A stretch of 64,000 nucleotides of DNA from assembly GCA_977016875.1 (NCBI GenBank), contig CDRNST010000188.1:2232001-2296000 (forward strand), written 5' to 3'. This document shows positions 1,641 to 56,205 of this stretch, piece after piece (the stretch's first letter is position 1; the number at the start of each line of letters is the position of its first letter). The translations under genes were made by a program, and so were the position numbers. The notes under the pieces were generated by a model that made no database searches, was not told where the DNA came from, and worked only from the letters and a program-made list of their open reading frames with translations. Source of the DNA: Pavona decussata. Its lineage: Eukaryota.

Positions 1641-2433
1641 GCAGGCTACCAGACTCGCAGACTCGGCCAACATGTAGCGCACGCGCACTAGATCACTGCG
1701 TTTTAGCATATACGAAGAAATCCTATTTTATAACATGGCGCTCCGCCCAAGTAATTAAGGACCGACTTTAAGTAATTCTTGCATGCGAACATAGATTTAA
1801 TATTCCAAATAGCGGTTGGCCTTTCTAGAAAGCGCGTATACGGTTATGAACCTAGTAAAATTGCCCTATAGAGAGACCCTCCACTACCTTCTCCCAATAA
1901 TCCCCGTAGTTCATTAATCAGACCCCAGCGGGAGACTACTGAAGCCCTCCTAAGTTAAGATGTATCTTATTTTTTTTTCTCTGATATTCTGTACTATTCT
2001 GTAAAAAAGACTTCAAGGTGGCGGATCCAAGATGCCGGCTGCATATAGAGAACAAGATATGGCGTCATAAGTCTACTAGCCTCTACTTTGCAGACCTCCT
2101 TTTTAGAAGACTATTGGACTTTGGTTCTTTTTTGGAGGGAGGGAGATTACGTTGCATTTAGTAACAGAAAATTATGAAGACCATAGTCTATGTGATAAAC
2201 AAAGCGGCATCGACTAGACAGAGGCGAAGATATAGCATCTGGTTTATCATATAATCTTCTTGAAATAAGCGAAAGAATATTGTGTCAAACATACAACTTG
2301 TCCAGTTCCAAAAGACTTGAAAATACACCAGGAGGTAGACTTTGAATTTCGTTCCCAGACAAGTCCCTGCAGGATAATTAAAAATAATATTAGAGACAAT
2401 GGAAAGTACAAAGTGACCATTGCCTTAATAAAA

Positions 2434-2579: not shown

Positions 2580-2651
2580 AGGAGGGTCAGCTTTGATAAT
2601 TTGGAGAATATTCCAGCCGGAAGACTTCGAAGTTTATTCGTATACAAGTAC
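2580..2651 (-). CDS. LRR exon [24 protein letters not shown]
   Basis: 72 bp; acceptor tttcttgcag, donor gtaagt; open frame. Confidence 0.92.
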
Positions 2652-5600
2652 CTGCAAGAAATAGGACACTGGTCAATTTTAAGTGGCAAGGAGAAATCAC
2701 GCGCATAGCCACGTGCATACGGACATAAGTGACATTGTCAAGGCCATATAAAAACAATTTCAAATGAAACACCGAGAAATGTCGAAAGTCTTAACCTTTT
2801 GTAGTTTAACATTCCTAATATCTACTGCTTGCTTTGTTGTTACAGATTTCATTTAGGTAACATTGCATTCTGAATATCACCTCGAAAGATATGATGGCTT
2901 GGAAAACAACGATTCCTTCAGTTGTGTTTATCTTTTTGAAAAGTCCGAACTGAAGTGTCGGTCATGATTTTAATTTCATCATCAGTATCGTGACCAAGAA
3001 ATATAGTAAAAAAAAAAAATGGAAAAACAATCGAATGAATAAATCAACAAATTGGCCTTCTTAACGTAAATTCAACATGAAAATAAAAAAAACCTCCAAC
3101 TGTAAACTTACAGACTTTGAAGATTGTTCAGTTTAGAGAATACAGTTCCTGGCAGTTCAGCGATTGAGTTACTTCCAAGATGCCTAATCAAGTTGAAAGG
3201 TATAAAAGAAAATAAAAACTTCAGTAATAGGTAGTTTGCATCGCCGTCATGTTGGTGTACAGAACAAAAGAAAATTTGTTCACAAAGTTTGCATAAAAAT
3301 GGCAGGTAACTCCCAGAGGAGAAAAATATCATTGTCCCTGTCCACCAACATGGCTGCCATGACGTCACATGTAAACCGTCAATTAGATCTGCGTTCTCCT
3401 TCCTGTACTAGCTAAGGCAATATTTGTTGAAAGAGCTCATCTCAGTATGAATATGTTAGTTATGGCGTTTAATCAATTCTTTTCTGAAAGGGAGGAAAGG
3501 TTGACTTAAATGGAAGTTAACGTCAACGACGCTCACATTGTTATACGAATGCGAATGGCACCTAACATATAGCTCGTACATTCAATTCATACTTTTCCAA
3601 ACTTCAGATTTGCTCAAGTAAATTAATGAATGAGTGAGGCAGAGGAGGGGGGGGGGGAGGGTCTTTCTTCTAAGGTTTTCGTCCTACTATCGTCACATTT
3701 TAGCAGCCCTCTTGGTACTTATGACATATGCAAATTAGGTCACGTGACTCAGTTTTTCGCGAAAGGAACGTAGGCCCAGGTGTTAATCCACCTGAGTGGT
3801 ATTTTTTTTTTTAGGGGAAGAGTTTTTATGAAATTGCCTTCTTAATTCTTTAATGGCTAATAATTTACCCTCCACCCATCCATCAGGCTTCGGTTGCTCC
3901 ACTCGAGGCGACTGATGGTTGGCGTATAACATACATCAGGGGAATGCGAACGCCGTAGTATTCTTGGCTCAAAAGAAAACCTTCGTTTCGGTGGATCAAA
4001 GCGCCTCTATTGAGTGGTTTATATCGTCCTTATTTGAACGCACCCAAAAATTTTTCCTAAACGGTTCTCTTCCCAGCAACTGTGTATTGTCCTGCGGTTT
4101 CCCTCAGGGGACAATTTTGGGAACACGCCTTTTTCTCTCATACATTTATGACCTACCCAATTGTATCGTGTACTCACAGCCCCGAATGTATGCCGATGAC
4201 ACCCACTTGACGCTTGCAGGTAATAATGATAAAATAAAGATCTTGCCAGCTTCAGTGAAAGACTCATTTCTACTAAGCTCACACTAAATAAACCTAAAAC
4301 TGAATTCATGTTAATTGGCTCTTGGCAAAGGTGGGAAGCAGTCTCTCATTCCCCCTTTCTAACAATCGGTGGGGCCCATAAGTCAGGTCCCGAGCACAAA
4401 GTCTATTGGTGTTCACATAGACGAAAATCTGAATTGGAACTTTTGTCCCTCACACAACGCTTCTATTGATTTAAAATTCTTTGGTGAAATCTCATTTTGA
4501 TTATTGGGGCGTTGTGTGGGGGTAACTGTAATACAACTCTTGCCAATAAACTCCAAAAGCTTCTTTCTTTCAAGAGCTGAGTCGGAGAAAGCTTGAATCC
4601 CAGCGCCAGATACAAAACGCTTGTATTGTGTAAAAATCTGTAAATGGGATCGCTCCTGATTATCTTCGATCTAAATTTGTCGAGCATAGCACCATTACTC
4701 GCTATATTCACTTCGCAAGACTGAAGATAAACTTGCTGTCCCCTTCCCCGCACTAATTAACTTCCTTAAAAAGAGTTTCAGGTATTTTGGGGCGGCAATG
4801 GAACAGTTTCCCAACTCAATTCCGGTACGCAAATGAGTTCTGTAGTGTCATTTAGGGTCTTTCCACACCGGCTGCAGCGGCTTCTTTTAGCTTTAATACG
4901 GATGGCGAATATATTTGGCTGTGAGACGCTTTCAAAGTCATGGTGTTTTTATTAGAGAGGCAAAACATTCAATTGTAATCAATTATGCCTGTGTTATGGA
5001 CACCTAATTATACAAGAAAAATTGGGAATAGGCTGACTAAATAGAGACTTCGCAAATACATGCCTCATCGATCGCACTAGTGTATTGAAAAACGTGGGTC
5101 CAGATGTGGTTTACTGCTTATTATGATTATGCGTTTACAAAGTATTTTTTGCTCTTAAGTGATTATATAAAGCCGACATTTTTCATGTTAATTGTTACAG
5201 TTAAGTGTTGCAATACATCGTGAGGCTGCAGCAGTGAAGTTAATGATGAACTTTTCTCATTTTTTTGAAGAAAATTTCCCTTTACTCAAAAGACAACAAA
5301 AGTCGAAGAAACAAACAAAGAAAAAAAGCGAACAAATAAACAAACGAACAAACAAAACAATCGGTTGATTCATTGCTGTCTCTTGGGGGTTCTAGCTTTC
5401 CAGATGGTGTGAATGCACATCTGGAGTTGTAAGTTATCTGGCACGAGTAAAAATCATGTCATTAAAAATATCATTTTGAGACGTTGCAATAGAGATATAT
5501 TGGGCAGAAAAAAAATGCAATCTACGGCTTAAATTACTTGCAGTGACCTAAGATTTCTAAGTTCGGATATTTTTTTCCTTGTAAGTTCAGCAATTGTTAC

Positions 5601-7761
5601 TTATCAAGACGCCTGTAAAAGAGAAAAATAAATGAACTAATCGCTGCTTGTATTTTTCCCTTTTCGTTGGAATATTCTCTTGTCACATACTTTGGCAGAG
5701 AGGATGGTATCATTTTGTGTTATAAGGCTGCTTCCTGTAATTTATTTCATTGTATGATGTTCTTAATTTTGGGACGTTCGTGCACCTTTTTTCTGTTGAG
5801 TTTGCTTAAACAAAAAACAAACAAACTGAAACGTCATTTAAATGCCATTATTTTGGCGTTTAGGGACGTTTAAATAATAAAAAAGATGTGGGCATAAAAA
5901 TGTGCATTTTCTCTATATTACTCACAATGACTGAAGACGTGTCAGCTCGGAGAATATTTGTTCCGGCAGTTCAGCAATATTGTTGCTTTTAAGATTCCTG
6001 TAGAAGAGAAAAAAGGATAAAAATTAAACTAATACTCCCTTACTTTTGCACTTTCTGTTAAATATCTAACTGTTACAGTGACGATGGTACAATCCTGCCT
6101 GGTTATTTTCGCTTTTTGCACTACTCGTCGCAAAATATTTCATATATAAGTGCTTCTTAAACGAGAAATCCTTAGATTTCTAGCTCTATAAAATTAAACG
6201 GCGTGAGAAATCCCTCACTGAAAAATTTATACTCACCAAAAACAACACTATCACTGCCTTTGACAACAAATGGACACCCTTCTTCTCAAAACATTTTACT
6301 TCTGGCACAGTCTGACGCGGTCGCACTCCTATCACACCATCCCGTATTACTATTATTGTTATTTCTACCTATTTACAATTCATTTCCTCTCTTAACTCAA
6401 ATAAGTGTATTTTTGTTTCCTTCTTTTTTTTTTTGTCTTCCATGTAGCATGGACATTGTAAGTTGTTTTAGTTAGTTGTAAGTATAGTAAGTATTGTTAA
6501 CGATGTAGATATAGTTATTGTGGTTTGTATTGTGAGTATTGTAAGAAATGTTAGTAGTGTTTAGTATTGTAAATGTGCTGTCATGTAAGACAAATAAAAT
6601 TGTAATCATTAAAAAAGTGACGATGGTAACACGTTCTAAAACTCCAAGGAGTGTTCTAAAGCTTTATTTGCACAATTTGATAGTTTCAAGGGAGCCTTAA
6701 GTTGCAAGTTACCAAGAGCACCTTCATAGGTGGGCACAATTAGCGCTATTTCTACTATCTTTTCGCGAAACCCACAACCAGTGGCAATATGTTAACGTTT
6801 CATTTTCGTCTTGATCTCGCCTCCCGCCCTTTTCCAACATTCGTACTTTGGGAAAGTACGAAGGACTTTTAGTAATCAAAATTAAAGATTTGGAGGCTTG
6901 TTGACTTGGACATTTTCTGTCGTAAGATTTTAGTTTTGAAAAGCTTGGCAGGGACCTTTTTTAAGGTTAAATAAAAAGCGTATTTATAAAAGGCGTGCTC
7001 GCTTGATTATAAGGTAAGCTTAAGATTGATGGTACTTCGCTTTTGTAGCTATAAAAAAGTAGAAGGCTCCATTTACATTCCGTGTCAAACTTTGCCTATT
7101 GTTATGGTTGACTTTTTAGGAGACAATAGACCTATTTCACGAACCGTTTTCGTCGCGAACACACACAGTCTTTAACAGAAAACACATTTAACGGATCGAT
7201 TTTTGTTGGAATTACATTGCCTAAACTTGCCTAATTTGCTGAATGTTTTTAAACAACACCAGTCGGCAAAAAGTTAGCAATCAAAGTTGGTTTTAAGGCA
7301 CCTCTTTTGTTTTGTTTGAGAGATTTTTGTTGTTGTCATTGATAGTGACGCGGATTTTCTCTCGTGTGCGTGTATATATCTGTGAGGATTGTGTTGCCTT
7401 AACGCGATGAATTGCTGAAAGACTGATCTTTATGAGAATTAAGTACATACTAGAGTTTGAACATTTTTTTTATGTCATGAGTAGCGCACGGAATTAGATA
7501 GAAAATAGGCTATTTCCATGATGGCGTCACTTTTTACTACAACTGCCAGAATTCATTTCGTTTTTCTCTTCAAATGCAAATTTTGTAATCCCAGTGGACA
7601 GCAAAGAGCAAAAGCTCTAATTAGCATGAGAAAACAAAAACCAGAAGGATTCTGGTAGTTGTAGTAAAATGACGTCATAGTGAAAATGTCCTATTACACT
7701 CTTACTAGCAAGCATTGTTGACCAAAATAGAGCAATAAGAGAGCAGCTTAATAAAAGATCA

Positions 7762-7797
<36 letters not shown>

Positions 7798-13700: not shown

Positions 13701-16700
13701 TAGCAGATCACGGCTACAGTTACCTCAAGTACACCTACATGGAAAATAATTCGTTCGAATGTATGTGAGTACTTGGCCATAGTTTTGACAGATGATAATG
13801 AAGAGCGCGTATGCAAAATGCAAGGTGAGAACTTTACCATCCACAAACACGCACTCTATTCTCCAAGCGTTTTGTTAAATCTTCCTCGAGTCGTCACTTC
13901 TCCTCTTGTTCCTTGCGATATCTTTTTAGCCATTTTTCGTCTGCTATCGGCTCGTCCGCGTACGGTTCGAGTGTATCATCATCTTCACACGTATTACTTG
14001 TTTCGTGGACGCTATCTATCGCCTCGACTTCGACGCTTTCAAATTCGTCCTAGCAGCTTTCTTCAGCGGTTTGCTCACTTTCCGTGTCAGATATTAAGTT
14101 TTCTGCCATGGAATATACTTATTTGGAGCTAATTTTTTCCTTCCTACCGGTGAATCTGACGATTTTCTTTCTGCCGCGAACGGACTTTACTGAAGGTCAA
14201 ATGAGTGCATAGACACGAGAGTTCCTGAATCTACGTCACAGACTATGTCACGGGGCCCTGTCGTGAGCCCGTCGGCATTCTTACCAGCGGGGCGGATTGA
14301 CCGCAATAAAATAGGATTTCAAAGATTTGTAAAATTAATAACAAATTCGCGTTTTATGCTAATCGTAAAAAATTTTCGCGGACGTTCTGTTCAGATTCAG
14401 ATAAGAAAATAAAAAAAAATTCAGTTATGGGCACTTTAAGCTCCACTGACGACAAGTTACAATATGGTTGGTATAACTCTCTAATTTCGAATAATGTCAC
14501 ATAAAAAAAGATCTCCAAAACTTTTTCCTTACCACCCCTGTGGTAAAGGAAAACAAATCCCTTATCAACTTACAGGAGGGTCAACTTTGATAATTTCGAG
14601 AATACTCCAGCCGGAAGACTTTGAAGTTTATTCGTATCCAAGTACCTGCAAGAAATAGGACATTGGTCAATTTTAATTGGTAAGGAGAAATCACGTGCAT
14701 AGCCACGTGCATACTAATAAATAATAATAAATTTAAATTTATACCGCGCAGTTTCTATAAAAATATTCAACTGCGCCTTACAATAAATATTAAATTCAAA
14801 ATAAAATGGAAGTTCAAAATTACAATTCTAAAATTCCATAAATAAATAAAATAATTCATCAATAATGCAAATTAATTATAATAACTATAGTAACTAATTA
14901 AATGCCCCATTAAATAAAAAAGTTTTAAGTCTAATTTAAAAAATATCTAAACTGGAAATAGATCTTATTGTGATAGGAAGCAGATTCCAAAGTCAAGGGG
15001 CAGAACAACTAAACGATCTATCCGCCAGGGTCTTCTTGGTTCTTATTGTCGGGAAAGCTAATAAGGTTGCAGAGTCATCGTTGCGCCTTAAATTATAGAT
15101 TATACCTAGACGGCGGCAAGATAGTAAATGACGTTAGTAATCAGGCGCCATACCATGTAATACCTTAAATACGAACATAAGTGACATTGTCAAGGCCATA
15201 TGAAAACAAATTCAAATGAAACACCGAGAAATGTCGAAGGTCTTAACCTTTTTTGTAGTTTAACATTCCGAATCTCTACTGCTTGCTTCGTTGTTACAGA
15301 TATCATTTAGGTAACACTGCAGTCTGAATATCACTCAAAAGATATGATGGCTTGGAAAACAATGATTCCTTTAGTTATGTTTCAAACGAGACATCTTTTT
15401 GAAAAGTCAGAACTGAAGTGTTGGTCATGATTTGAATATCATCATCAGTATCTTGACCAACAAATATAGTAAAAAAAAATGGAAAAACAATCAAATGAAT
15501 AAATCAACAAATTGGTCTTCAAAACGTAAATTCAACATGAAAATATAAAAAACCTCAACTTACAGTCTTTGCAGATTGTTCAGTTTAGAGAATACAGTTC
15601 CCGACAGTTCAGCGATTGAGTTACTTCCAAGATACCTAATCAAGTTGAAAGGTATAAAAGAAAAAAAAAATCAGTAATAGGTGGTTTGCATCGCCGTCAT
15701 GTTGGTGTACAGAACAAAAGAAAAAAAATTGTTCACAAAGTTTGCATAAAAATGGCAGGTAACTCCCAGAGGAGAAAAATCTTATTGTCCCGTCTGACCT
15801 CTTCGTTGCTTCAGTTCGTTGCTCTACTAACTTTGCATTCGGGTAACTGTTCATTTTGTGAGTTTGTCATAAGCCCATGGAAGATAATTAAGTAAATTAA
15901 AGACGATATATCTGAGCTGCATGGTGGGCTTTCTTTAATATCCAACTTGATTATTTGTGAGGCTTGGACGAACTGAGCTATCCAGCCAGCTGGGTGGTGG
16001 TCATATTCCCGTGGAGGATGAATAAATTAAAGTAGATATATCAAATCCAGCGAATTTGGATTACGTAGGAAACATTTAAATACAAGGAAGATAATTGCAG
16101 TTACCGTACGCAACTTGAGCACTTTGTAAAACGAAGCTTGAAAGTAACATAAAATAATAAAAATAAACCAAGCTTGCTTTTCGCAACTGCTCAAGTAGCG
16201 TACACTGTACGTATTGAGCGTTTTAAAAAGACGCGAAAGGCCACCGAAGATAAGTTCGCTGGCAGAAGTAATGATTTAGGCAACCGTTGGCGCTATTTTT
16301 ACCAACTTTTCGTGAAACCCACGTCTCACTATGTTGTAACGCTTTGGCCTTAATCGCGACTCCCGCCCTTTCCCACCACCCAACGCTGTTTGGAAAATTA
16401 ATAGCGCTAGGCTAAAAACCTACAAAAGATATGACTTTGCCAGTACATCCAACATTGCGCATTGGGGGGGGGGGGGGGGGGGGGGGGAGTGGTGGTCGAA
16501 CGCATTATAACACTTGTACCTAGTGACGATATGTTGTTGTTGTACTTTATCCTTGATAGAATCATGCTTCCTTTCCCACAATTCAATGTTCTTAGACGCT
16601 GAAAAGCGATTCAAAAGATGTCGAGTTCCTTGTACTATCCAACATTGCACCGGGACAAAGGGGGCGGATGGCCAAACTGGAATTAAGGTCCTTTTGGAGT

Positions 16701-19700: not shown

Positions 19701-22700
19701 TAAGAATCCTAACGGGTCGTAAACTGCTGCTTTTCGCCTCAAAACATTTCTCTTGGTGAATTCAAATCCATCTAACTGTAACAAGTGTCTAAAGGAAAAT
19801 TCTTCCCTTGTGGCGGCCCAGGACACTCAGCTTTATGAATCGACTTTATTTAAACACGGTAAATGGCTCAGCAAGCTGGTTTTCAGACATGCCGTGTGAT
19901 AATTACAAATTACAAATTGACCCCTCAAATTGTAGTCATGAATTTCAGAGGTTCTATGAAACCGCTCCCTAAGGTACGTCGGACAATTACTATTGAATAC
20001 TTTAAACATTGTATCTAATAAGTGCCTTTTTCTTCTTTCTTCTGAGTTTGTCCACTCCAAAGAATTTAGTACATCTGATAATCTGATAGAGTAATCAGTC
20101 CGAGTAATAATCCGTGCTGCTCTATTTTGTAACTTTTGCAATTTGTCAGCACGTGTTTTGGAACAGTCACCCCATACAATATCACAATAGTCAAAGTAGG
20201 GCTGGACAAGTGAATAGTAAATAGTTTTAAGAGTCTCTTGATTATCGGTTAGTTTTCTAGCTAAATACAGCATTCGCAGGCCATTAAAGACTTTGGATGA
20301 AATATTTTTGATCTGATTATCGCAGGTTAGCATTTCATCAATATGAACCCCCAGTAACTTAGCAGAGGGTTTATGTTCAATAGGTCTATTATCCAACTCT
20401 AGATTCATGAACTTGGCATTTGCCAAATTATGCCGAGAGCCAATTGTCATATAACTAGTTTTAGAAGTATTGGAACTTAATGTGTTTGTCTAATCCAATT
20501 ATGTGCTGCAATTAAGTCACTATTTATAAAGAAGATTCAATTCCGGATATATCTTTATGAGCTGTAGTTATATATGTATCATCGGTAAACATACCAGGCG
20601 TTGTATGCTGCAGATTAGGGAAAATCGTTTATATAAATTATGAACAACAGTGGTCCAAGTATAGAGCCCTGGCGAATGCCACATGATATATATCGTTCTG
20701 TGGATAAGACCCCATTTACACAACATCTCTGTGTTCTGCCAGTCAAATATGATATATGATTTACGCAGCTGGAGAGCATTGCCATTGACACCATAACAAC
20801 GCAGCTTACGTAGTAAGATGTAATGGTCAACAGTGTCGAAGGCTTTCCTTAAGTTGATAAATACACTACCATTAAGTTTACCAGCATCCATGTTGGCAAG
20901 CCAAAGGTTTACTGCACTTATCAAAGCTGTAGAGGTTGAATAATTTGGTCTAAAGGCAGATTGAGACTCAGTTAAAAGATTACCTGCTTGAAAATATTCT
21001 AACAGCTGAGAGTGCATGACCTTTCCACAATTTTCGATATGGCAGGTAGAATAGAAATCGGTCGGTAGTTGCTTGGAACATTTCTTTCATCCGACTTAAT
21101 AATAGGATGTACTTTTGCCTTTTTCCAATCATCAGGAAATATTCCAGTCTCCATCTCATGATTAATAATATCACATATAGAGTCTGAGATATACGCACTA
21201 AAAAGCTTTAAGAGTCTACTAGCTAGTAATGTTATCTAGCCCACACTGCCTTGCTGAGGGTTTAAGATCGGAAATAAGGTTTAGAATACATCCTACGTTT
21301 GTCGGGCGAAAACAAAAATTTAAATCGGTTCTATTTAAAAAATCCTCTGGTTGAGAAGCAGTATCAGGGATACCAGATGCCAGCTTACTACCTAGCGAAC
21401 AAAAGTGATTATTCATTTGTTCAGCTATATCTTGCTTTTGTACAAAATCTTTGCCCTCATAAAGAAGTTCATTTATAATTGTCATTTTAGGCTTGCAACC
21501 CAGGGAAATATGCAAACGAAACGCAAAAGACGAAAACCAACAAAAAACAACGAAAAACTCCGCTATTTACCTTTGTGTCTCTTGAAGTATTTTAAAACAA
21601 AAATTCAAATCTGGAGGTTGTTGGTTACCCGTGGCGATTGAATGACATTTAGATGTAATAATTGTTGCATTTTGAAAGGAAGAAAAAAGGAAGAAAAAAA
21701 AAATGAGTGGACCTAAAAATATTCAATTTCCCTAAGTTACTCACAGTGTTCGAAGATGTATTAGTTCCGAGAATACTTGTTCCGGCAGCTCAGCAATCCT
21801 GTTGCCACCAAGATCCCTGTAGAAGAGAAGTGAAAAAAAAATCAAACTGATATGTTATTCTTTTTTACACTTTCCATTAAAATATTAAATTTTTACATCA
21901 TTTGGCGATGGTGAAAACACGCTCTAAAACATCAAGGACTTTTCTAAAACTTCATTTATGCCGCGACACCGGCTCTGTTCTTCTTTTCCTGACGATGACA
22001 CTGCACACCAAAAGACCTTATAGACCTCAAAGATAGCGTTTACTTAAATAATCCGATATCCGATACGCTCAGCCTGATAACACGTGCCTCTATTCTCCAA
22101 TTCGACGGCGACGCATGAATTAGATTATGCTATAATGTAATCCTGTTTTTTGTTGTTGTTGTTGTTTGGCACAATTTGATAGTTTCAAGGTAAAAAGCAG
22201 TCAAAAGTACAAAAGTAGTCCGAGTACAACAAAAATAGCTCGCTTTGCTGACTTAATCATAGATTCAAAGACTTCACCGAAATGTGGTGCTGCAGTTGGG
22301 TTCCATTGGCAAATCACTCGCAGTTCCCTTTATGCGCTTACAAAGTTCGTTCCATTGTCTCTTAACATTTGCTGCGGCCAGCCTCTCCGCGCAGTCATTC
22401 TGACTAAAGCGTTAAGAAATGCATCAGTGTTCAAAGACGACGCCATCTCTAAGTGTCAACAATGAGTCTTCAAACAGAGAAACAACACAAATAGCGCTTA
22501 GCTCGCACTCTTCCACGTCCTTTCACAGCTCTCGAAAGGTCTGGGGGATTGCTGCAGTCTAATCTTCGGCATCGGATCCATTTGCTGGTGAGCTGGCTTT
22601 GACCGAAATCGTTTCGCACACTCAAAACATTCTCTTATGACTCTTTTTACTTGTTCACGAACATGGACCGCTTAGTATTTCTCCCGTACATGATTAATCG

Positions 22701-34700: not shown

Positions 34701-37700
34701 CTGACACCGGTGACAGACGCGAATTACATTAGACGCCAACTCTTTGTAACTCTTGTTAGACTTCGAACATTTCGCAAGACGTATGCCTAAAAGATACAAT
34801 GGATTTCGTAAACTTTATAGGAAAGACCAAGGTCTCTCAAGATACTATCTTAGTATCAATGGATGCAACAAGCTTGTATACAAATATACCACAGGAGGAG
34901 GGAATTACAACAGTATGCAAAGCATACGAGGCATTCCACAGCAATAAACCTCCTATACCGTAACACTACCTCAAAGAAATACTTAAACTTATTCTTCAGG
35001 AAAATTCATTCCAAGTTGTTGGAAACAATTATCTCCAGACCCATGGAACTGCAATGGGTACAAAAATGGCCGTTGCGTTTGCAAACATATGGCCGATATT
35101 GAAACAAAAGTGATAAGTCAAAGCAAAACAAAACCAATAGCAATAGAATGGAAACGTTTTATTGATGACATTTTCTCACTGTGGGACGGTGAGAAAAAGG
35201 AAATTAACCTGTTCATTGAACAAGCTAACAACTTCCATCCTACAATTAAATTTACGGCCGAAATTTCAGAGAACGAGACAAGCTATTATTATCACAGTTC
35301 AACACGTGTCTCTCCTGTAGTTCCGCGAGAACAATGCCGCTGGTCAGCGCTTCCCAATTGCCTTCGAGTTACTTGCAGCAGTAGCACTCGCTGATATTTG
35401 CTAGCAGATCACGGCTACAGTTACCTCAAGTACACCTACATGGAAAATAATTCGTTCGAATGTATGTGAGTACTTGGCCATAGTTTTGACAGATGATAAT
35501 GAAGAGCGCGTATGCAAAATGCAAGGTGAGAACTTTACCATCCACAAACACGCACTCTATTCTCCAAGCGTTTTGTTAAATCTTCCTCGAGTCGTCACTT
35601 CTCCTCTTGTTCCTTGCGATATCTTTTTAGCCATTTTTCGTCTGCTATCGGCTCGTCCGCGTACGGTTCGAGTGTATCATCATCTTCACACGTATTACTT
35701 GTTTCGTGGACGCTATCTATCGCCTCGACTTCGACGCTTTCAAATTCGTCCTAGCAGCTTTCTTCAGCGGTTTGCTCACTTTCCGTGTCAGATATTAAGT
35801 TTTCTGCCATGGAATATACTTATTTGGAGCTAATTTTTTCCTTCCTACCGGTGAATCTGACGATTTTCTTTCTGCCGCGAACGGACTTTACTGAAGGTCA
35901 AATGAGTGCATAGACACGAGAGTTCCTGAATCTACGTCACAGACTATGTCACGGGGCCCTGTTGTGAGCCCGTCGGCATTCTTACCAGCGGGGCGGATTG
36001 ACCGCAATAAAATAGGATTTCAAAGATTTGTAAAATTAATAACAAATTCGCGTTTTATGCAAATCGTAAAAAATTTTCGCGGACGTTCTGTTCAGATTCA
36101 GATAACAAAATAAAAAAAAATTCAGTTATGGGCACTTTAAGCTCCACTGACGACAAGTTACAATATGGTTGGTATAACTCTCTAATTTCGAATAATGTCA
36201 CATAAAAAAAGATCTCCAAAACTTTTTCCTTACCACCCCTGTGGTAAAGGAAAACAAATCCCTTATCAACTTACAGGAGGGTCAACTTTGATAATTTCGA
36301 GAATACTCCAGCCGGAAGACTTTGAAGTTTATTCGTATCCAAGTACCTGCAAGAAATAGGACATTGGTCAATTTTAATTGGTAAGGAGAAATCACGTGCA
36401 TAGCCACGTGCATACTAATAAATAATAATAAATTTAAATTTATACCGCGCAGTTTCTATAAAAATATTCAACTGCGCCTTACAATAAATATTAAATTCAA
36501 AATAAAATGGAAGTTCAAAATTACAATTCTAAAATTCCATAAATAAATAAAATAATTCATCAATAATGCAAATTAATTATAATAACTATAGTAACTAATT
36601 AAATGCCCCATTAAATAAAAAAGTTTTAAGTCTAATTTAAAAAATATCTAAACTGGAAATAGATCTTATTGTGATAGGAAGCAGATTCCAAAGTCAAGGG
36701 GCAGAACAACTAAACGATCTATCCGCCAGGGTCTTCTTGGTTCTTATTGTCGGGAAAGCTAATAAGGTTGCAGAGTCATCGTTGCGCCTTAAATTATAGA
36801 TTATACCTAGACGGCGGCAAGATAGTAAATGACGTTAGTAATCAGGCGCCATACCATGTAATACCTTAAATACGAACATAAGTGACATTGTCAAGGCCAT
36901 ATGAAAACAAATTCAAATGAAACACCGAGAAATGTCGAAGGTCTTAACCTTTTTTGTAGTTTAACATTCCGAATCTCTACTGCTTGCTTCGTTGTTACAG
37001 ATATCATTTAGGTAACACTGCAGTCTGAATATCACTCAAAAGATATGATGGCTTGGAAAACAATGATTCCTTTAGTTATGTTTCAAACGAGACATCTTTT
37101 TGAAAAGTCAGAACTGAAGTGTTGGTCATGATTTGAATATCATCATCAGTATCTTGACCAACAAATATAGTAAAAAAAAATGGAAAAACAATCAAATGAA
37201 TAAATCAACAAATTGGTCTTCAAAACGTAAATTCAACATGAAAATATAAAAAACCTCAACTTACAGTCTTTGCAGATTGTTCAGTTTAGAGAATACAGTT
37301 CCCGACAGTTCAGCGATTGAGTTACTTCCAAGATACCTAATCAAGTTGAAAGGTATAAAAGAAAAAAAAAAATCAGTAATAGGTGGTTTGCATCGCCGTC
37401 ATGTTGGTGTACAGAACAAAAGAAAAAAAATTGTTCACAAAGTTTGCATAAAAATGGCAGGTAACTCCCAGAGGAGAAAAATCTTATTGTCCCGTCTGAC
37501 CTCTTCGTTGCTTCAGTTCGTTGCTCTACTAACTTTGCATTCGGGTAACTGTTCATTTTGTGAGTTTGTCATAAGCCCATGGAAGATAATTAAGTAAATT
37601 AAAGACGATATATCTGAGCTGCATGGTGGGCTTTCTTTAATATCCAACTTGATTATTTGTGAGGCTTGGACGAACTGAGCTATCTAGCCAGCTGGGTGGT

Positions 37701-40700: not shown

Positions 40701-43700
40701 CTGTTGACGTTGGCTTGTTAAACTTCCACTCTGGCCAGTCTTGTTTTGACTTCTTCAGATATTCGGGTCATAAGTCCACCATAGGTCTGCGCTTGCTAAC
40801 TCTTCTACTGTCAGACATTTTGTCCCAGGGTCGGCGGGGTTTACATCCGTAGGAACATAGCCCCACTGATTAGGAGCAGAGAACTCATGAATTTCTCCAA
40901 CATGATGGGCTATGAACGGTCTATACTCTCTACTCTGACCTTGGATCCAGTAACCCACATTCACACTGTCCACCCAATAGGTCACTCCATTTGTTGGTAT
41001 CTTGAGTGGAGAGCAAAGTTTTCTTGTTAATCGTAATCCAATGAGTGCACCCAAAAGTTCAAATCTGGGGATGCTCACTGCTTTCAATGGTGCCAGCCGA
41101 GACTTCGGCATAATCATTCGAGCAGTGACATTTAAATCCTCATACACATGACGTGCGTAAACCATAGCTGTATGTGCGTTCTCTGACGCGTCACTGAATG
41201 TATAAATGCTCAGTTCTTCCATATTAAGACTTCGGTCTTTCAAACACCTTGGGATTTTCACAAGTTCAAGGTCTTCCAAGTCTTGGAACCACTTTGTCCA
41301 TTCTTGCTGATGAGGTGTCGGCAACAGTTCATCCCAATCCCGTGCCTCCAGCCATGCCATTTGTATCAACAACTTGAACCTGATTACATTAAAGGTGATA
41401 AGAATCCTAACGGGTCGTAAACTGCTGCTTTTCGCCTCAAAACATTTCTCTTGGTGAATTCAAATCCATCTAACTGTAACAAGTGTCTAAAGGAAAATTC
41501 TTCCCTTGTGGCGGCCCAGGACACTCAGCTTTATGAATCGACTTTATTTAAACACGGTAAATGGCTCAGCAAGCTGGTTTTCAGACATGCCGTGTGATAA
41601 TTACAAATTACAAATTGACCCCTCAAATTGTAGTCATGAATTTCAGAGGTTCTATGAAACCGCTCCCTAAGGTACGTCGGACAATTACTATTGAATACTT
41701 TAAACATTGTATCTAATAAGTGCCTTTTTCTTCTTTCTTCTGAGTTTGTCCACTCCAAAGAATTTAGTACATCTGATAATCTGATAGAGTAATCAGTCCG
41801 AGTAATAATCCGTGCTGCTCTATTTTGTAACTTTTGCAATTTGTCAGCAAGTGTTTTGGAACAGTCACCCCATACAATATCACAATAGTCAAAGTAGGGC
41901 TGGACAAGTGAATAGTAAATAGTTTTAAGAGTCTCTTGATTATCGGTTAGTTTTCTAGCTAAATACAGCATTCGCAGGCCATTAAAGACTTTGGATGAAA
42001 TATTTTTGATCTGATTATCGCAGGTTAGCATTTCATCAATATGAACCCCCAGTAACTTAGCAGAGGGTTTATGTTCAATAGGTCTATTATCCAACTCTAG
42101 ATTCATGAACTTGGCATTTGCCAAATTATGCCGAGAGCCAATTGTCATATAACTAGTTTTAGAAGTATTGGAACTTAATGTGTTTGTCTAATCCAATTAT
42201 GTGCTGCAATTAAGTCACTATTTATAAAGAAGATTCAATTCCGGATATATCTTTATGAGCTGTAGTTATATATGTATCATCGGTAAACATACCAGGCGTT
42301 GTATGCTGCAGATTAGGGAAAATCGTTTATATAAATTATGAACAACAGTGGTCCAAGTATAGAGCCCTGGCGAATGCCACATGATATATATCGTTCTGTG
42401 GATAAGACCCCATTTACACAACATCTCTGTGTTCTGCCAGTCAAATATGATATATGATTTACGCAGCTGGAGAGCATTGCCATTGACACCATAACAACGC
42501 AGCTTACGTAGTAAGATGTAATGGTCAACAGTGTCGAAGGCTTTCCTTAAGTTGATAAATACACTACCATTAAGTTTACCAGCATCCATGTTGGCAAGCC
42601 AAAGGTTTACTGCACTTATCAAAGCTGTAGAGGTTGAATAATTTGGTCTAAAGGCAGATTGAGACTCAGTTAAAAGATTACCTGCTTGAAAATATTCTAA
42701 CAGCTGAGAGTGCATGACCTTTCCACAATTTTCGATATGGCAGGTAGAATAGAAATCGGTCGGTAGTTGCTTGGAACATTTCTTTCATCCGACTTAATAA
42801 TAGGATGTACTTTTGCCTTTTTCCAATCATCAGGAAATATTCCAGTCTCCATCTCATGATTAATAATATCACATATAGAGTCTGAGATATACGCACTAAA
42901 AAGCTTTAAGAGTCTACTAGCTAGTAATGTTATCTAGCCCACACTGCCTTGCTGAGGGTTTAAGATCGGAAATAAGGTTTAGAATACATCCTACGTTTGT
43001 CGGGCGAAAACAAAAATTTAAATCGGTTCTATTTAAAAAATCCTCTGGTTGAGAAGCAGTATCAGGGATACCAGATGCCAGCTTACTACCTAGCGAACAA
43101 AAGTGATTATTCATTTGTTCAGCTATATCTTGCTTTTGTACAAAATCTTTGCCCTCATAAAGAAGTTCATTTATAATTGTCATTTTAGGCTTGCAACTCA
43201 GGGAAATATGCAAACGAAACGCAAAAGACGAAAACCAACAAAAAACAACGAAAAACTCCGCTATTTACCTTTGTGTCTCTTGAAGTATTTTAAAACAAAA
43301 ATTCAAATCTGGAGGTTGTTGGTTACCCGTGGCGATTGAATGACATTTAGATGTAATAATTGTTGCATTTTGAAAGGAAGAAAAAAGGAAGAAAAAAAAA
43401 ATGAGTGGACCTAAAAATATTCAATTTCCCTAAGTTACTCACAGTGTTCGAAGATGTATTAGTTCCGAGAATACTTGTTCCGGCAGCTCAGCAATCCTGT
43501 TGCCACCAAGATCCCTGTAGAAGAGAAGTGAAAAAAAAATCAAACTGATATGTTATTCTTTTTTACACTTTCCATTAAAATATTAAATTTTTACATCATT
43601 TGGCGATGGTGAAAACACGCTCTAAAACATCAAGGACTTTTCTAAAACTTCATTTATGCCGCGACACCGGCTCTGTTCTTCTTTTCCTGACGATGACACT

Positions 43701-52700: not shown

Positions 52701-55700
52701 CGCCTTCCTGCAACTCCACATAATGTCTCTGCTGCGACAGTCTGAAACTCAGCTTCTTGATGATCCAATCGCGAAGTGTCTCAACACACTCTGATTTCTT
52801 ATGTTCAAACACCCATCTGTTGTAATTAGCAAGCATCAACTCGGTCATTTTCTTCTGTATCTTAATGTGCAAAGGGATAACTCTTCCTTAGCTTCTCAAA
52901 TTTTGGTCTCCATCTCCTTCTGACGGCGTGCGTATTCTTCATCAAGTTGTTTTCGAGCGCGGTTGATTGATTCTTCCTTTTTACGAAATTTCTCCTCGAG
53001 GTGTCGGCGCGCTTTCTTTTCCTTTGAATGCAAACTCAATAGTTTCCCCGGAAAATTCTGATGCTTGACTCGAGAGTTCATCTTTGATGGCATGCAAATA
53101 CTCTTGGAAATATTCTTGAGCTTAAAAAATTCTTCTTCGATATCCTCAATTTCACGGCTTGTTTTCTCCAGAGCGCTACGAACGCTTGCTTTCGAATACA
53201 ATTCTGCCAATGATGACAAATCTACAACAACACGTTCCTGTGCTTCATTCAACAGTTTTCGGGAATCTCGAATCTCACGATGATTCGCTGCGATCGCATC
53301 TTCTAACAAATCCAACAACTGATTTTTCCTCCTTGTAAACGACGATTTCGACTTACCTCTTGCGACTTTCCGTTTCTGAATCTTGTCTGAAATTTCTTGG
53401 CGGGCATCATCCGCTGCGGCGAGGTCTTTAATTTCTGCTCTATCACGAGCTTTCTTCTTCTTCTCCGGATTTCTTGGCATGGTTTTCCTTTCAAGAACCT
53501 CGCTCTGCTACCAATTATGGTTTCAATTGACCGTTTATTCCTTTTCTAAGGCAAAATACAGTACATGTACTCCAAAAAAGCCTCTTGGTCCCAAAAAACG
53601 ACCCAAAACGTTTTTTTTTTTCATCCAAGTAGGTAATGTGACCCCCAAACCAAAAAACCACTTCTTACCCTCCGTGGCAGTTCGTCAATCTGGAGGTTGT
53701 TGGTTACCCGTGAAGATTGAATGGCGTTGAAATTCAATAATTGTGGCATTTTTGGACGTTAAAATAATAATAAAAAATAAATGTGTGCACAGAAAAATAT
53801 GCAATTTCGATAAGTTACTCACAGTGACTGAAGATATGTCAGTTCGGAGAATACTTGTTTCGGCAGCTCAGCAATCCTGTTGCTACCAAGATCCCTGTAG
53901 AGGAGAAAGTGCTAAAAAAGCCAGCTAATATGTTCTTCTTTTTAACAATTTCCATTAAAATATTTATAGAAAAAAAAATCACTATTGTTTGACAAGAAGC
54001 TCTATTGGAAAAGAGGCCAACAGTTAGTAAGCGTTCACTTAAATAACGCGATATTCCATACGCTCAGCCTGACTAACACGTACTTCTATTCTTAATTTCG
54101 ACGGCGCCGCATAAATTAGATTATGCTAAAACGTTATCCTGTTCTTTTTTTGTTTTTTTTTTGGCACAATCTGATAGTTTCAAGGAAAAAAAGTATTAAA
54201 AAAATCTTGTTAGCTTTGCGCAAATGAAGTCTCTCACGGCATTAAATAAAATTACTAAGAGCACCTTCACAGAAACGGTCTACCTACCGCTACATCACAA
54301 AGCGTGATTACAAATTTGTGTACATAATTTAGTTGATCTTCCGAACCCAAGCGTAGAAACTGAGGACTTGAAATCTTTATTAAAAAATTCATTTGTAAAG
54401 TTTATAATTTTTAAGGCGATTATTTTATAAAATACCCTTCGTGGCAGTTCATTAATTTTATTATCATAGACGTTAACATTTTGAAGATGTTAACGAACCA
54501 AAAGCTAATTATAACCGATTTTGTTGATGGATTTGAAGAACTTCCGCCTAATAATGCCTGTGAAAAGAGGTTTATTTTCCTTTGTGTCTCTTAAATGATT
54601 TAAGCTATGAAAATGGAGAAAAATAACACTTGGAGGTTGATGGTTACGTGGTTAGAGTGAATGTAATTAAAATGTCATTATTTTGAGATTTTGGGATTAA
54701 ATTTTGCAATTGCCCTAAATTACTCACAGTAACTGAAGATGTGTCAGTTCAGAGAATATCTTTTCCGGCAGCTCAGTAATTTTGTTGCCTCCAAGATTCC
54801 TGTAGAATAAAAAAAGACCAATAAAAGATCTAATTAGCTTTTCTGTTTACACTTTCTAAATCATTCATTTCTTACTTCATCTGGCATGATCCTTTTATGA
54901 TACAATGCTGCTTCCTGTAACTTAATTTATTTTTTTTAATATTTTTTGTCATGGAAATTTCCACATATGTAAACATAATTGCATAAATACTTACACTTAT
55001 GTACACTATTGAAGACAAAATTTGAATACTCCAAGAATAAAAAATAAAAATAATAATTAAGGGATAGAAAGGAAAAAGAAACAGGTAAAAGTCTTACAAA
55101 AATTTGGTGATTAGAACAGCTCGTTTAACGTATTGTAAACTGGAAAGTTTCTTTTCCCACATTTTAAGTGACAAGTTAATTTACCTCTCGCCCCCGCAAT
55201 ATGGAGCTCTGTAGTATAGACACGCCTTGCTCTGGCTAAGAAAGCGCCAAGAGAGGGAAGACTACCATTACATTTCCTGACGTACAGATAATATTTCCCT
55301 AATAACAGTATGTGATTAAACAAGAAATAATCCTCTCCTATGTCGACTTTACCAAAGATGACATCAGTGTCGGGAAAGAAGCACTGATGTGCGTGACGTA
55401 GAATATTAACTTGGAAATTTGATGAAAAATGTCACGAAATAGTAACGCGAGCAATACTTTAAAAATAAGTGAACAAAGCAGATTGCACAATTGTACTCCG
55501 GCAAAGTCCGAAGTTAATACACTGCATGACAATGATGTAACTGCACGCGTAGTATTAAGCTAAATAAGGAAGAAAAACGCGTGTAATTGTGTAATTGAAA
55601 TAAATTTAGGAGCATTACAATAGTGTAGGCTTCGGTTTATACCGTGCAATCAGTTAGATACAAAAACGTTATACAAATATTATTGTCTCTAAGCCAGGAC

Positions 55701-56205
55701 AGGACTTATTTCCAGGAAACAGATGAAATTTTGCGGAGGAAGAGTAAATGCTCGATGAATTCTGGTTCCTTGGGAACTGCGTCAAACCGAAACGAAACAG
55801 CTTTTCATTAGTGAAGACTATATTATTAAGACTTTTGTACAGAAACGCTCTAATTTTTGACTCGGGCGTGACACGAAATGGGAGGGACTAATTTTTTTCC
55901 CAGTTTTAATCAAATTTCTGATAACTTTGTTGAAAACGTTTGTCTAGCCGTTGACCGTTATTTCGTTGTAAGACGACCGTTATCTTCGCACGTTCACGCC
56001 TTTTCTTGCTGCTGAGATTGTTTCATGGATGCCAATTACGGCTTCACTGCTACTTTTGAGCATGAATCCATTCCGGTGTGGTTCCCAGGAAGTGAAAAAC
56101 TAAACGGGCTTTCCATTGTCAAAGAATACTTACAAATATTCGAGGTTTGGAAGTTCAGCGAATGATTCATTTGACAAAAACGGTATTTTGTTGTTCAGCA
56201 AATCC
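2580..56205 (-). CDS. Multi-exon leucine-rich-repeat protein, partial: 15 intact 72-bp LRR exons, probably the ectodomain of a cell-surface receptor (LRR-GPCR, TLR-like or other); both ends lie outside the identified exons
   Basis: Manual splicing of AG..GT-bounded 72-bp exons gives an open 360-aa chain: [72 protein letters not shown] [[72 protein letters not shown]]x3 [72 protein letters not shown]. It matches LxxLxLxxNxIxxLPxxxFxxLxx. Continuity across the N gap is assumed. Confidence 0.85.
3112..3183 (-). CDS. LRR exon [24 protein letters not shown]
   Basis: 72 bp; pyrimidine tract then gattag acceptor, donor gtaagt; visible at the end of ORF 3108..3368. Confidence 0.92.
3226..3384. mobile_element. 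Short MITE (catgttggtg...caccaacatgg family); truncated paralogs near 15676, 26527 and 37378
   Basis: Inverted ends tttgcatcgccgtcatgttggtg / caccaacatggctgccatgacgtcacatgtaaa. Confidence 0.6.
3880..4890 (+). mobile_element. Decayed CR1/L2-group LINE reverse transcriptase fragment
   Basis: [21 protein letters not shown] and MYADDTHLT motifs in ORF 3919..4287; downstream [11 protein letters not shown]-like and KKSFRY..AA.WNS-like remnants with frameshifts. Confidence 0.85.
5542..5612 (-). pseudogene. Dead LRR exon (RLDK*, frameshift, [18 protein letters not shown])
   Basis: 71 bp; in-frame TAA; acceptor ttttacag intact; donor is gcaagt instead of gtaagt/gtgagt; flanks resemble those of the other D/N-type exons. 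Confidence 0.8.
5926..5997 (-). CDS. LRR exon [24 protein letters not shown]
   Basis: 72 bp; acceptor ctctttctacag-type (ttctacag), donor gtgagt. Confidence 0.92.
6090..6615 (+). mobile_element. 5'-truncated L1/Tx1-type LINE 3' end with 13-bp target-site duplication
   Basis: agtgacgatggta at 6077-6089 and 6616-6628; aataaa plus A-tail at the 3' end; decayed ORF2 C-terminus (AKYFIYKC...TEKFI...FDNKW). Confidence 0.8.
7504..7695. mobile_element. MITE with ~50-bp imperfect TIRs
   Basis: aataggctatttccatgatggcgtcactttttactacaactgccagaat / attctggtagttgtagtaaaatgacgtcatagtgaaaatgtcctatt. Confidence 0.75.
7764..7812 (+). repeat. (AATC)n microsatellite, paralog of 2434-2485
   Basis: Followed by gaatgaatgaaaa..gcttgatattgtatgaaaaaccattccgtttccaataaaaaa, as at 2497-2557. 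Confidence 0.92.
8084..11808. mobile_element. Non-autonomous DNA transposon with ~500-560-bp TIRs, (T/A)TAA-flanked, Kolobok-like
   Basis: 8084-~8643 is the reverse complement of ~11312-11808 (gcggcaatccagaaatttcgcctggaggtgtgcaaaatgaaaaaaatcgaaaattcccaaaatt...); flanks ataa / ttaa; no transposase inside. Confidence 0.88.
9009..9320. mobile_element. MITE with ccccgggg..tactcc termini and 9-bp TSD (MULE-like TSD length), nested in the 8084-11808 element
   Basis: gttgcagac at 9000-9008 and 9321-9329; internal accctatttatgacc repeats. Confidence 0.88.
12045..12404 (+). pseudogene. THAP zinc-finger exon (N-terminus of the Kolobok transposase)
   Basis: M..CVAARC...HRIP...W......LCSMHF THAP signature; premature TAG at 12303; frame continues to a gtaagc donor at 12405. 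Confidence 0.85.
12565..13580 (+). mobile_element. Penelope-like retroelement RT fragment, deleted and frameshifted; repeated from 23546 and 34396
   Basis: [32 protein letters not shown] and [15 protein letters not shown] motifs. Confidence 0.85.
13590..14109 (-). pseudogene. KolX-like / P2X7-ballast-like Cys-rich gene remnant, 2 exons (14109-13838, 13734-~13590); repeated in tandem copies 2 and 3
   Basis: [12 protein letters not shown]..acidic..[22 protein letters not shown] | intron gtaaag..catgtag | [23 protein letters not shown]; several stop codons. Confidence 0.75.
14574..14645 (-). CDS. LRR exon [24 protein letters not shown] (tandem copy 1)
   Basis: 72 bp; ttgcag / gtaagt. Confidence 0.9.
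14715..15168 (-). mobile_element. L2-type LINE 3' fragment inserted in an LRR intron (also ~25565-26018 and ~36416-36869)
   Basis: Minus strand [27 protein letters not shown] with a (TTA)n-like tail; absent from the paralogous intron at 2710-2730; atac duplicated at both ends. Confidence 0.8.
15564..15635 (-). CDS. LRR exon [24 protein letters not shown] (copy 1)
   Basis: 72 bp; gattag / gtaagt. Confidence 0.9.
16750..19830 (-). mobile_element. BEL/Pao LTR retrotransposon 3' half (RNase H, integrase, C-terminal DUF5641-like region, PPT, 3' LTR ~16750-17272), copy 1
   Basis: [56 protein letters not shown] motifs; tttcttcccctccc (PPT) abuts an LTR bounded by tgtaaca...gctaaca; many stops. Confidence 0.9.
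19833..21505 (-). mobile_element. CR1/L2-group LINE ORF2 fragment, pseudogenised, copy 1
   Basis: [50 protein letters not shown] motifs split across frames. Confidence 0.9.
21745..21816 (-). CDS. LRR exon [24 protein letters not shown] (copy 1)
   Basis: 72 bp; ttctacag / gtgagt. Confidence 0.9.
22218..23543 (-). mobile_element. Second, related BEL/Pao pol fragment, cut by the tandem junction (also 33068-34393)
   Basis: Aligns by eye with 17880-19278, with substitutions and small deletions. Confidence 0.88.
23546..25285. mobile_element. Orphan right half of the Kolobok element (Penelope fragment, KolX, right TIR), copy 2
   Basis: Ends gttatgggcact|ttaa at 25285; no left TIR in this copy. 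Confidence 0.85.
25424..25495 (-). CDS. LRR exon YLDTN-type (copy 2)
   Basis: Identical to 14574-14645 including splice sites. Confidence 0.87.
26414..26485 (-). CDS. LRR exon YLGSN-type (copy 2)
   Basis: Identical to 15564-15635. Confidence 0.87.
27598..30678 (-). mobile_element. BEL/Pao 3' half, copy 2
   Basis: Near-identical to 16750-19830. Confidence 0.9.
30681..32353 (-). mobile_element. CR1/L2-group LINE fragment, copy 2
   Basis: Near-identical to 19833-21505. Confidence 0.9.
32595..32666 (-). CDS. LRR exon DLGGN-type (copy 2)
   Basis: Identical to 21745-21816. Confidence 0.87.
34396..36136. mobile_element. Orphan right half of the Kolobok element, copy 3
   Basis: Ends gttatgggcact|ttaa at 36136. 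Confidence 0.85.
36275..36346 (-). CDS. LRR exon YLDTN-type (copy 3)
   Basis: Identical to 14574-14645. Confidence 0.87.
37265..37336 (-). CDS. LRR exon YLGSN-type (copy 3)
   Basis: Identical to 15564-15635. Confidence 0.87.
38448..41528 (-). mobile_element. BEL/Pao 3' half, copy 3
   Basis: Near-identical to 16750-19830. Confidence 0.9.
41531..43203 (-). mobile_element. CR1/L2-group LINE fragment, copy 3
   Basis: Near-identical to 19833-21505. Confidence 0.9.
43443..43514 (-). CDS. LRR exon DLGGN-type (copy 3)
   Basis: Identical to 21745-21816. Confidence 0.87.
43916..45760 (-). mobile_element. Second BEL/Pao pol fragment, continuing past the end of the triplication to the gap
   Basis: ORF 45019..45543 has [25 protein letters not shown]; YDPL.FLSPF at ~45650-45680. 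Confidence 0.9.
45761..45888. other. Assembly gap (128 N)
   Basis: Run of n. Confidence 1.
45889..46500 (-). mobile_element. CR1/L2-group LINE endonuclease/linker fragment
   Basis: Minus strand [45 protein letters not shown] remnants. Confidence 0.75.
46532..47185 (+). mobile_element. Penelope-like RT N-terminal fragment
   Basis: [44 protein letters not shown]. Confidence 0.88.
47190..49393 (-). mobile_element. BEL/Pao 5' part (gag with CCHC knuckles, protease) and probable LTR remnant
   Basis: [47 protein letters not shown]; right end cgaaatgttgctaaca is the same as the LTR terminus at 17257-17272. Confidence 0.8.
48133..48382. mobile_element. TA-flanked MITE (Tc1/mariner-type TSD) inserted in BEL gag
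   Basis: ta|caatcctggcca ... tggccaggattg|ta; removing it restores the KELERFAD frame. Confidence 0.85.
49395..49670 (+). mobile_element. Penelope-like C-terminal fragment
   Basis: [33 protein letters not shown]. Confidence 0.7.
49890..53664 (-). mobile_element. BEL/Pao LTR retrotransposon with two diverged LTRs (49890-~50066; 53518-~53664 truncated), internally deleted
   Basis: PBS TGGTAGCAGAGCG (53501-53513, minus strand, tRNA-iMet-like); PPT aagggggagaa; gag CCHC, protease LLDDAST, integrase [17 protein letters not shown]; RT and RNase H absent between ~51800 and 51730. Confidence 0.92.
53823..53894 (-). CDS. LRR exon [24 protein letters not shown]
   Basis: 72 bp; ctctacag / gtgagt. Confidence 0.92.
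54728..54799 (-). CDS. LRR exon [24 protein letters not shown]
   Basis: 72 bp; ttctacag / gtgagt. Confidence 0.92.
54928..55345 (-). mobile_element. L1/Tx1-type LINE 3' fragment
   Basis: [14 protein letters not shown]...PSL..F......Y..E..IA motif (ORF 55111..55323); A-rich tail near 54930. Confidence 0.75.
56134..56205 (-). CDS. LRR exon [24 protein letters not shown] (divergent; likely an early repeat of the array)
   Basis: 72 bp; tttttcag / gtaagt. Confidence 0.9.

Follow-up and report, generated by a model that had tools for sequence, protein, structure and literature searches.

A long series of 72-bp LRR exons in Pavona decussata probably belongs to one serially spliced membrane-receptor gene

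Introduction

The LGR4/5/6 and glycoprotein-hormone receptor genes carry one leucine-rich repeat (LRR) per exon of about 72 bp. The LRRs of Slit are also individual 72-bp exons, and this layout has been proposed as a basis for alternative splicing. An array of exons of this size was studied here in a 64,000-nt stretch of the coral Pavona decussata (GenBank assembly GCA_977016875.1, contig CDRNST010000188.1, positions 2,232,001 to 2,296,000, forward strand; hereafter the window). The initial annotation of the window described fifteen interchangeable LRR exons, likened their repeat to that of lamprey VLR cassettes and read the locus as an expandable cassette library for variable ectodomains. The fifteen exons are, in all likelihood, the central part of one minus-strand membrane-receptor gene of ~104 kb whose LRR exons are spliced serially. 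The gene adds an unusually LRR-rich member to a cnidarian receptor family that is known but has remained unstudied, and one of its exon blocks was triplicated very recently. Exon number evolves quickly, but the data gave no sign that cassettes are chosen, that splicing varies or that receptors are assembled as in VLRs.

The array of single-repeat exons

The window was scanned for open stretches of 72 nt between AG and GT. The fifteen exons (2580-56205, minus strand, exactly 72 bp) were recovered as described, each preceded by a polypyrimidine tract and AG, followed by GTRAGT or GTATGT, beginning with G and ending in CT or TT. On the minus strand of the whole window the scan gave 16 matches; 200 shuffles averaged 0.28 and never exceeded 2. 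When ten exons were scanned singly, LRR_8 was the best Pfam match in 10/10 (12.5-18.2 bits; the cut-off is 27 bits and the model spans 2.5 repeats, so a single repeat is expected to fall below it). These two results confirm the array. Exons were searched one by one. LRR-like segments from a six-frame motif scan of the window were all on the minus strand; one such motif at ~54436-54504 was dropped, as usable splice sites were absent.

The 23 open codons of every one of the fifteen exons fit LxLxxNxIxxLPxxxFxxLxxLxx, which places them in the 'typical' 24-residue LRR class (LxxLxLxxNxLxxLPxxxFxxL scaffold). Across 20 distinct exon sequences, L1, L3, N6, F16 and L19 were invariant, and I8, L11 and L22 nearly so. 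The fifteen exons exist as the initial annotation had counted them, but only 9/15 are distinct in sequence, and the array is longer. Exons 4/7/10 (type G, starting DLGGN...), 5/8/11 (type D, YLGSN...) and 6/9/12 (type E, YLDTN...) are nucleotide-identical within each trio. A sixteenth exon opens four S-Q pairs that run on below the window start, and 11 further 72-bp exons of the same phase lie downstream of the window (window-relative -1649 to -12084). The gene thus holds 27 72-bp LRR exons, in the block order Q, G, G, (G-D-E)x3, G'-D'-E', (S-Q)x4 and four unique exons, and together with one 70-bp exon 28 LRR exons. All 27 share one intron phase, and gain or loss of any keeps the frame, so the frame-neutrality noted in the initial annotation was upheld.

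Gene structure and transcripts

The analysis also covered 80 kb of flanking sequence. In tblastn with the Montipora protein XP_068730350, the parts of the homologue fell along one strand in the right order, from a CUB/Ig-like part upstream of the LRR exons to Cys-rich, transmembrane (TM) and tail exons downstream of them (Table 1). The gene spans ~104 kb (window-relative +75.3 kb to -28.9 kb). Read 5' to 3', it would consist of a CUB exon, an Ig-like exon, the 70-bp LRR exon and the 27 72-bp LRR exons, and then of two Ephrin-receptor-like cysteine-rich exons, an exon with DUF7630 and a multi-pass region (~9-10 helices), and a C-terminal tail exon. The large TM exon is open over 562 codons, encodes many hydrophobic helices and lies on the same strand, 8 kb downstream of the last LRR exon; phmmer gave E 2.8e-160 to XP_068730350 (P0003) and 1.6e-177 to a second homologue (P0002). 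The TM module, the Cys-rich exons and the CUB/Ig-like part were thus all found, as expected of a member of the cnidarian LRR/Ephrin_rec_like/DUF7630 family, and the claim that these are real coding exons of an LRR protein was supported, the protein being a membrane protein.

The Ig-like exon ends in phase 1. With its two start bases and its TT end, the 70-bp exon matches the phases on both sides, and it is therefore probably the first LRR exon, fitting between the Ig-like exon and LRR exon 1. Further upstream, an LRRNT-like open piece (Table 1) is probably a relic or an exon with some other partner; a more decayed copy of this stretch was seen at ~58500-58620. The intron that separates the TM exon from the tail exon holds, on the gene's strand, an uninterrupted 1022-codon open reading frame (ORF) of LINE-type endonuclease/reverse transcriptase (-22693..-25758).

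The initial annotation would have been refuted by a lack of transcripts with these exons; a transcript contig with three of them was found. An RNA contig of run X5 (depth 7.56) joins 37265|36346 and 36275|32666, linking exons 5-6-7 (window 32500-37400). The skipped parts run GT..AG on the gene strand, exactly at the predicted exon borders, and the joints were absent from the DNA-like run X1. These exons are therefore transcribed, and splicing follows their order in the genome. Unless back-splicing made it, the E-to-G joint (exon 6-7) implies a template with two or more tandem units. No skipping joint was seen at 32500-37400 in four runs, which were compared as contigs, from which rare forms could drop out. 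The runs in which the TM exon occurs belong to ten studies, the samples being either of one organism or labelled 'coral metagenome'; in RNA-like runs of several studies, 21-45% of the exon's words were present.

Table 1. Exons and related features of the gene, in gene order. Positions are window-relative; negative values lie below the window start and values above 64,000 beyond its end. LRR_8, best Pfam match of the exon scanned singly; scan, AG/72 nt/GT scan; residues are those of XP_068730350.
Feature	Position	Strand	Basis or remark
CUB/Ig-like part	+75223..+74633	-	residues 47-207; tblastn, E 5e-26
LRRNT-like open piece (C-x3-C-x3-C-x-C ... FN)	59047..59154	-	AG/GT flanks; phase misfits Ig-like exon
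70-bp S-type LRR exon (ELSWNKIQRLPPGVFSNILELTL)	58693..58762	-	phase; 89% identical to S-type exon e18
LRR exon 1, Q type, 72 bp	56134..56205	-	scan; LRR_8
LRR exon 2, G type, 72 bp	54728..54799	-	scan; LRR_8
LRR exon 3, G type, 72 bp	53823..53894	-	scan; LRR_8
LRR exon 4, G	43443..43514	-	scan; same sequence as exons 7, 10
LRR exon 5, D	37265..37336	-	same sequence as exons 8, 11; RNA joint to exon 6
LRR exon 6, E	36275..36346	-	same sequence as exons 9, 12; RNA joints on both sides
LRR exon 7, G copy 2	32595..32666	-	exon 6-7 joint in RNA run X5
LRR exon 8, D copy 2	26414..26485	-	scan
LRR exon 9, E copy 2	25424..25495	-	scan
LRR exon 10, G copy 3	21745..21816	-	scan
LRR exon 11, D copy 3	15564..15635	-	scan
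LRR exon 12, E copy 3	14574..14645	-	scan
LRR exon 13, G-like (G')	5926..5997	-	scan; LRR_8
LRR exon 14, older D copy	3112..3183	-	differs from D at 5/72 nt; LRR_8
LRR exon 15, older E copy	2580..2651	-	differs from E at 5/72 nt; LRR_8
LRR exon 16, S type	2295..2366	-	scan; LRR_8; absent from the initial annotation
Cys-rich exon, first	-14930..-15148	-	residues 491-563; tblastn, E 1e-13
Cys-rich exon, second	-16536..-16664	-	residues 560-602; tblastn, E 3e-9
TM exon	-20026..-21633	-	tblastn, E 1e-157, 47% identity over 554 columns
Tail exon	-28633..-28887	-	tblastn, E 2e-23

Block duplication and the assembly gap

Self-BLAST showed that 12695-45241 consists of three head-to-tail copies of a 10,851-bp unit (99.77-99.82% identical, with ~20 differing positions per unit). 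Each unit holds exons G, D and E together with BEL/Pao retrotransposon fragments, and the intron ORFs are fragments of this kind (Peptidase_A17, RVT_1 and integrase in Pfam), in keeping with the earlier remark that the neighbouring transposon ORFs are broken. Being identical, the nine triplicated exons add no sequence diversity. The older S-Q units, which are 86-91% identical, form four exon pairs. Unequal crossing-over between introns would have enlarged the LRR region, an older event giving the four S-Q pairs and a very recent one the three 99.8% identical 10.85-kb G-D-E blocks.

Window G+C content is 39.8%, and the single run of N (128 N at 45761-45888) is an assembly gap in the intron between exons 3 and 4, ~520 bp from where the tandem array ends. 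No exon is interrupted by it, and with a single phase in all exons the frame could not be broken either. Depth of run X1 was uneven across the unit (~120 vs ~280), with repeats inside the unit and no single-copy baseline.

Several repeats were observed. A high-copy repeat at 34300-36100, and at the same place in the other two units, reached X1 word depths of 20,000-80,000 (vs ~120 in unique neighbours); it was also present in RNA-like runs, with internal joints that differed between runs. Window positions 100-1600 belong to a repeat family with at least 48 genome copies at 92-96% identity. The gene's 5' intron shares a 5.66-kb stretch (59586-64000 and on to +65243, beyond the window) with C133:200601-206258 at 99.77% identity. 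This stretch, a transposon insertion or segmental copy of very recent date, is not a haplotig: contig C133 was considered as a second allele, matching the window end at 100%, and was rejected, as it shares only this repeat (59586-65243).

Family and relatives

A search of a representative library of 1.84 billion proteins with the TM exon gave 2647 matches. The best named ones were each an 'uncharacterized protein', from Oculina patagonica, Montipora, Actinia, Nematostella and Aurelia. Homologues carry CUB/MAM/SRCR, LRR_8, Ephrin_rec_like and DUF7630 in Pfam; in XP_068730350, LRR_8 was matched at E 5e-36. A literature search on DUF7630, on coral LRR with Ephrin_rec_like and on 72-bp Slit exons returned nothing on this cnidarian family.

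In the GenBank-annotated homologue of Oculina patagonica the LRR exons are likewise 72 bp and of the same phase. One LRR per exon is therefore the family's normal gene structure and not a device special to this locus. The layout is not universal in the family, since two full-length members from a metagenome (ENA assembly ERZ25878582; 1287 and 1150 aa, LRR_8 + DUF7630) are intron-less. For one homologue (P0001) the contig ends 4.1 kb upstream of the TM exon, and LRR exons are absent from those 4.1 kb.

The coral genome holds at least 79 paralogous TM exons, many of them clustered. The paralogue 134 kb upstream on the same strand (G000:C188:2344457-2346100) has a TM exon that is 93% identical and carries one in-frame TAA. 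The exon types D, E, G', S and Q, of which the present gene has four copies each, were matched once apiece in this neighbour; LRR exon number therefore changes fast by block duplication. The array is thus expandable, as first proposed, in the sense of recent duplication of whole blocks (the triplicated G-D-E, and a two-exon block in four copies as against single copies in the neighbour). Elsewhere in the genome, part of the S-type exon was matched five times in tandem with a period of 1423 bp (82% over 56 nt; G000:C209:114097-119844), which is another LRR-exon array.

The membrane module

The AlphaFold model of the TM module, built with 51 homologues, was confident (pLDDT 88.4, pTM 0.85). In the ESM Atlas the fold recurred at TM 0.86 in cnidarian LRR_8/DUF7630 clusters and at TM 0.68-0.73 in Ephrin_rec_like/TRP clusters, the latter from haptophytes, green algae, ciliates and giant viruses. 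Atlas clusters of this fold carry the Pfam family TRP (PF06011) in 11-15% of members, and 12/51 homologues matched PF06011, below threshold, at E <= 0.01 (best E 1.1e-6). No member of the cnidarian LRR/DUF7630 family is known to have channel activity. PF06011 is a fungal TRP-like/Flc calcium-channel-type family (PMC8618638, PMC9600462), and from sequence likeness and model a channel-like or transporter-like role of the module would be only a lead. In one haptophyte Atlas cluster with the same fold, Ephrin_rec_like was present in 45% and TIR_2 in 18% of members, a hint that immune-type signalling domains can be coupled to the module.

The product would act as a cell-surface receptor or adhesion protein, its long LRR solenoid binding an external ligand and coupling to a membrane module with a distant likeness to the calcium-channel-type TRP/Flc proteins of fungi.

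Discussion

Several results weigh against the reading of the locus as one serially spliced receptor gene. Transcript support consists of one low-depth contig (7.56) from one run and covers three exons, and back-splicing (circular RNA), in place of tandem units, is in principle another possible source of its E-to-G joint. Extending the flanks, as the initial annotation had advised, gave the CUB/Ig, Cys-rich, multi-pass TM and tail exons, but neither a signal-peptide exon nor an LRRNT cap exon of fitting phase was found in the gene region. The link from the Ig-like exon through the 70-bp exon to exon 1 is a matter of phase logic only, and an unmapped stretch lies between LRR exon 27 and the first Cys-rich exon. 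The number of 10.85-kb units near the gap cannot be taken as certain. For the TM module, nothing among solved structures rose above noise by sequence or fold (hmmsearch E 8.6e-4, to a designed protein; Foldseek E >= 0.02; VIA-align Z <= 6.2), and PF06011 on the TM exon itself stayed below threshold (18.4 bits vs a cut-off of 28.5). The receptor or adhesion function is one that we infer.

Selection on the exons, which the initial annotation had argued from their staying open, was seen in part. Scaffold residues never change between duplicate exons (positions 2, 4, 5, 13, 20, 23 and 24 are the most variable), and indels are absent from every exon, with many in the introns of the S-Q units. Mismatch divergence in these units, on the other side, was not clearly lower in exons than in introns (6.5% vs 8.2%, p = 0.07), and dN/dS (nonsynonymous to synonymous substitution) between duplicate exons was 0.5-1.2; both count against the reading. 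Because of these values, constraint is visible only at scaffold positions and against indels. The distribution of variable and invariant positions is the usual LRR pattern, and counts are too small for claiming positive selection.

Two other readings would make the exons a source of variants. In a combinatorial, Dscam- or Slit-like splicing library, exons would be included or skipped to give variable ectodomains from one gene. All 28 LRR exons are in one phase, so any skip keeps the frame, and one isoform among the NCBI models of the Montipora homologue is without 25 residues of the part that follows the LRRs. The sole transcript contig, however, joins consecutive exons, and no skip joint was seen in the four runs (a weak point, given that contigs drop rare forms); nine of the fifteen exons are identical copies, so that choice among them alters length only; and the Oculina homologue with the same exon layout is annotated as one serial protein. 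We consider such a library improbable, and the variant-making cassette library of the initial annotation was not borne out: the exons stand in order and in one orientation within one gene. Somatic VLR-like assembly, in which the exons would be donor cassettes copied into an incomplete receptor gene, shares with this locus only the 24-residue LRR modules and the many similar copies close by. Every exon has a canonical acceptor and donor, the exons are ordered between the gene's own 5' and 3' exons, and the GT..AG joints were found in RNA while the joined form was absent from run X1. This reading has next to no chance of being right.

The remaining alternatives concern the integrity of the locus. 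The triplication may be an assembly artefact, with another true unit number, the gap a mis-join and the fifteen exons an overcount; the closeness of the array end to the gap, the 99.8% likeness of the copies and the uneven X1 depth (~120 vs ~280) without a single-copy baseline would fit this. With ~20 differences per unit, however, the copies were assembled as distinct sequences, and the E-to-G RNA joint needs two or more serial units or circular RNA, which makes an artefact unlikely, though less so than a splicing library. The gene could also be a recently inactivated paralogue in which stops have not yet accumulated in the open exons. The missing LRRNT and signal-peptide exons, introns crowded with retrotransposons, dN/dS near 1 between duplicate exons and the TAA in the neighbour's TM exon point this way. 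Against it, reading frames are uninterrupted in the 28 LRR exons, the 562-codon TM exon and the tail exon, and splice sites are intact, while introns are indel-rich; spliced RNA exists, and part of the TM exon's words recurs in RNA-like runs. We give decay little credence. One intact gene with serially spliced LRR exons is in our view the likely explanation of what was seen.

Beyond the single gene, the locus may be part of a germline-diversified family of coral surface receptors (at least 79 paralogues, often tandem), in which ligand-binding LRR solenoids would shift fast in length through gain or loss of exon blocks, copy number would be polymorphic between colonies and signalling would run through the unstudied TRP/Flc-like multi-pass module. 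We hold this wider proposal tentatively and would sooner doubt than assert it as a whole; if true, symbionts, microbes or non-self tissue might be what such receptors recognise. What looked like a diversity-generating device is how exons are normally laid out in a big cnidarian receptor family, so far unstudied, which couples an LRR ectodomain to a multi-pass module without a solved relative and with a faint fungal TRP/Flc link. LRR count jumps by exon blocks between recent paralogues, which makes the family a reasonable candidate for fast-evolving coral recognition receptors. ORF-based gene finders miss such genes almost entirely, and coral receptor repertoires may therefore be under-counted.

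Comparison with known systems

The locus resembles LGR4/5/6 in having single-LRR exons of equal length and phase before a multi-pass membrane domain. Unlike in LGR4/5/6, this domain is not a rhodopsin-type 7TM: no 7tm family was among the Pfam matches of the TM exon or the 51 homologues, and no G-protein-coupled receptor was among the Foldseek or VIA-align matches of the module. As in Slit, 72-bp single-LRR exons can be skipped without a frameshift. Unlike Slit, the gene is without LRRNT/LRRCT-bounded sub-domains and without EGF, laminin-G and cystine-knot exons; its downstream exons are Ephrin_rec_like, DUF7630 and TM helices, and its product has a many-helix membrane anchor.

With the VLRs of lamprey and hagfish the locus shares 24-residue 'typical' LRR modules, many similar ones being clustered. 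VLR cassettes, however, are non-exons that are copied somatically into an incomplete gene, whereas here canonical exons, AG/GT-flanked throughout, ordered and in one orientation, are joined by RNA splicing. The likeness drawn in the initial annotation thus fails on the defining features. To the fungal TRP-like/Flc family (PF06011), with Aspergillus nidulans TrpR (PMC8618638) and Cryptococcus Flc1 (PMC9600462) as examples, the TM module shows a weak sequence likeness, and the ectodomain differs.

The closest systems are the cnidarian relatives, to which the TM exon is 47-54% identical. An LRRNT exon of fitting phase was not found in this locus, a point in which it departs from its relatives. 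Module order is the same in Montipora capricornis XP_068730350, Oculina XP_078342705/KAL9960146, Nematostella A7RJF1 and an Aurelia 'Leucine-rich...' model, namely CUB, Ig-like, LRRs, Cys-rich, DUF7630, multi-pass TM and tail. The LRR count sets the present gene apart: it has ~28, whereas the Montipora protein has ~9 and the Oculina model ~5-6.

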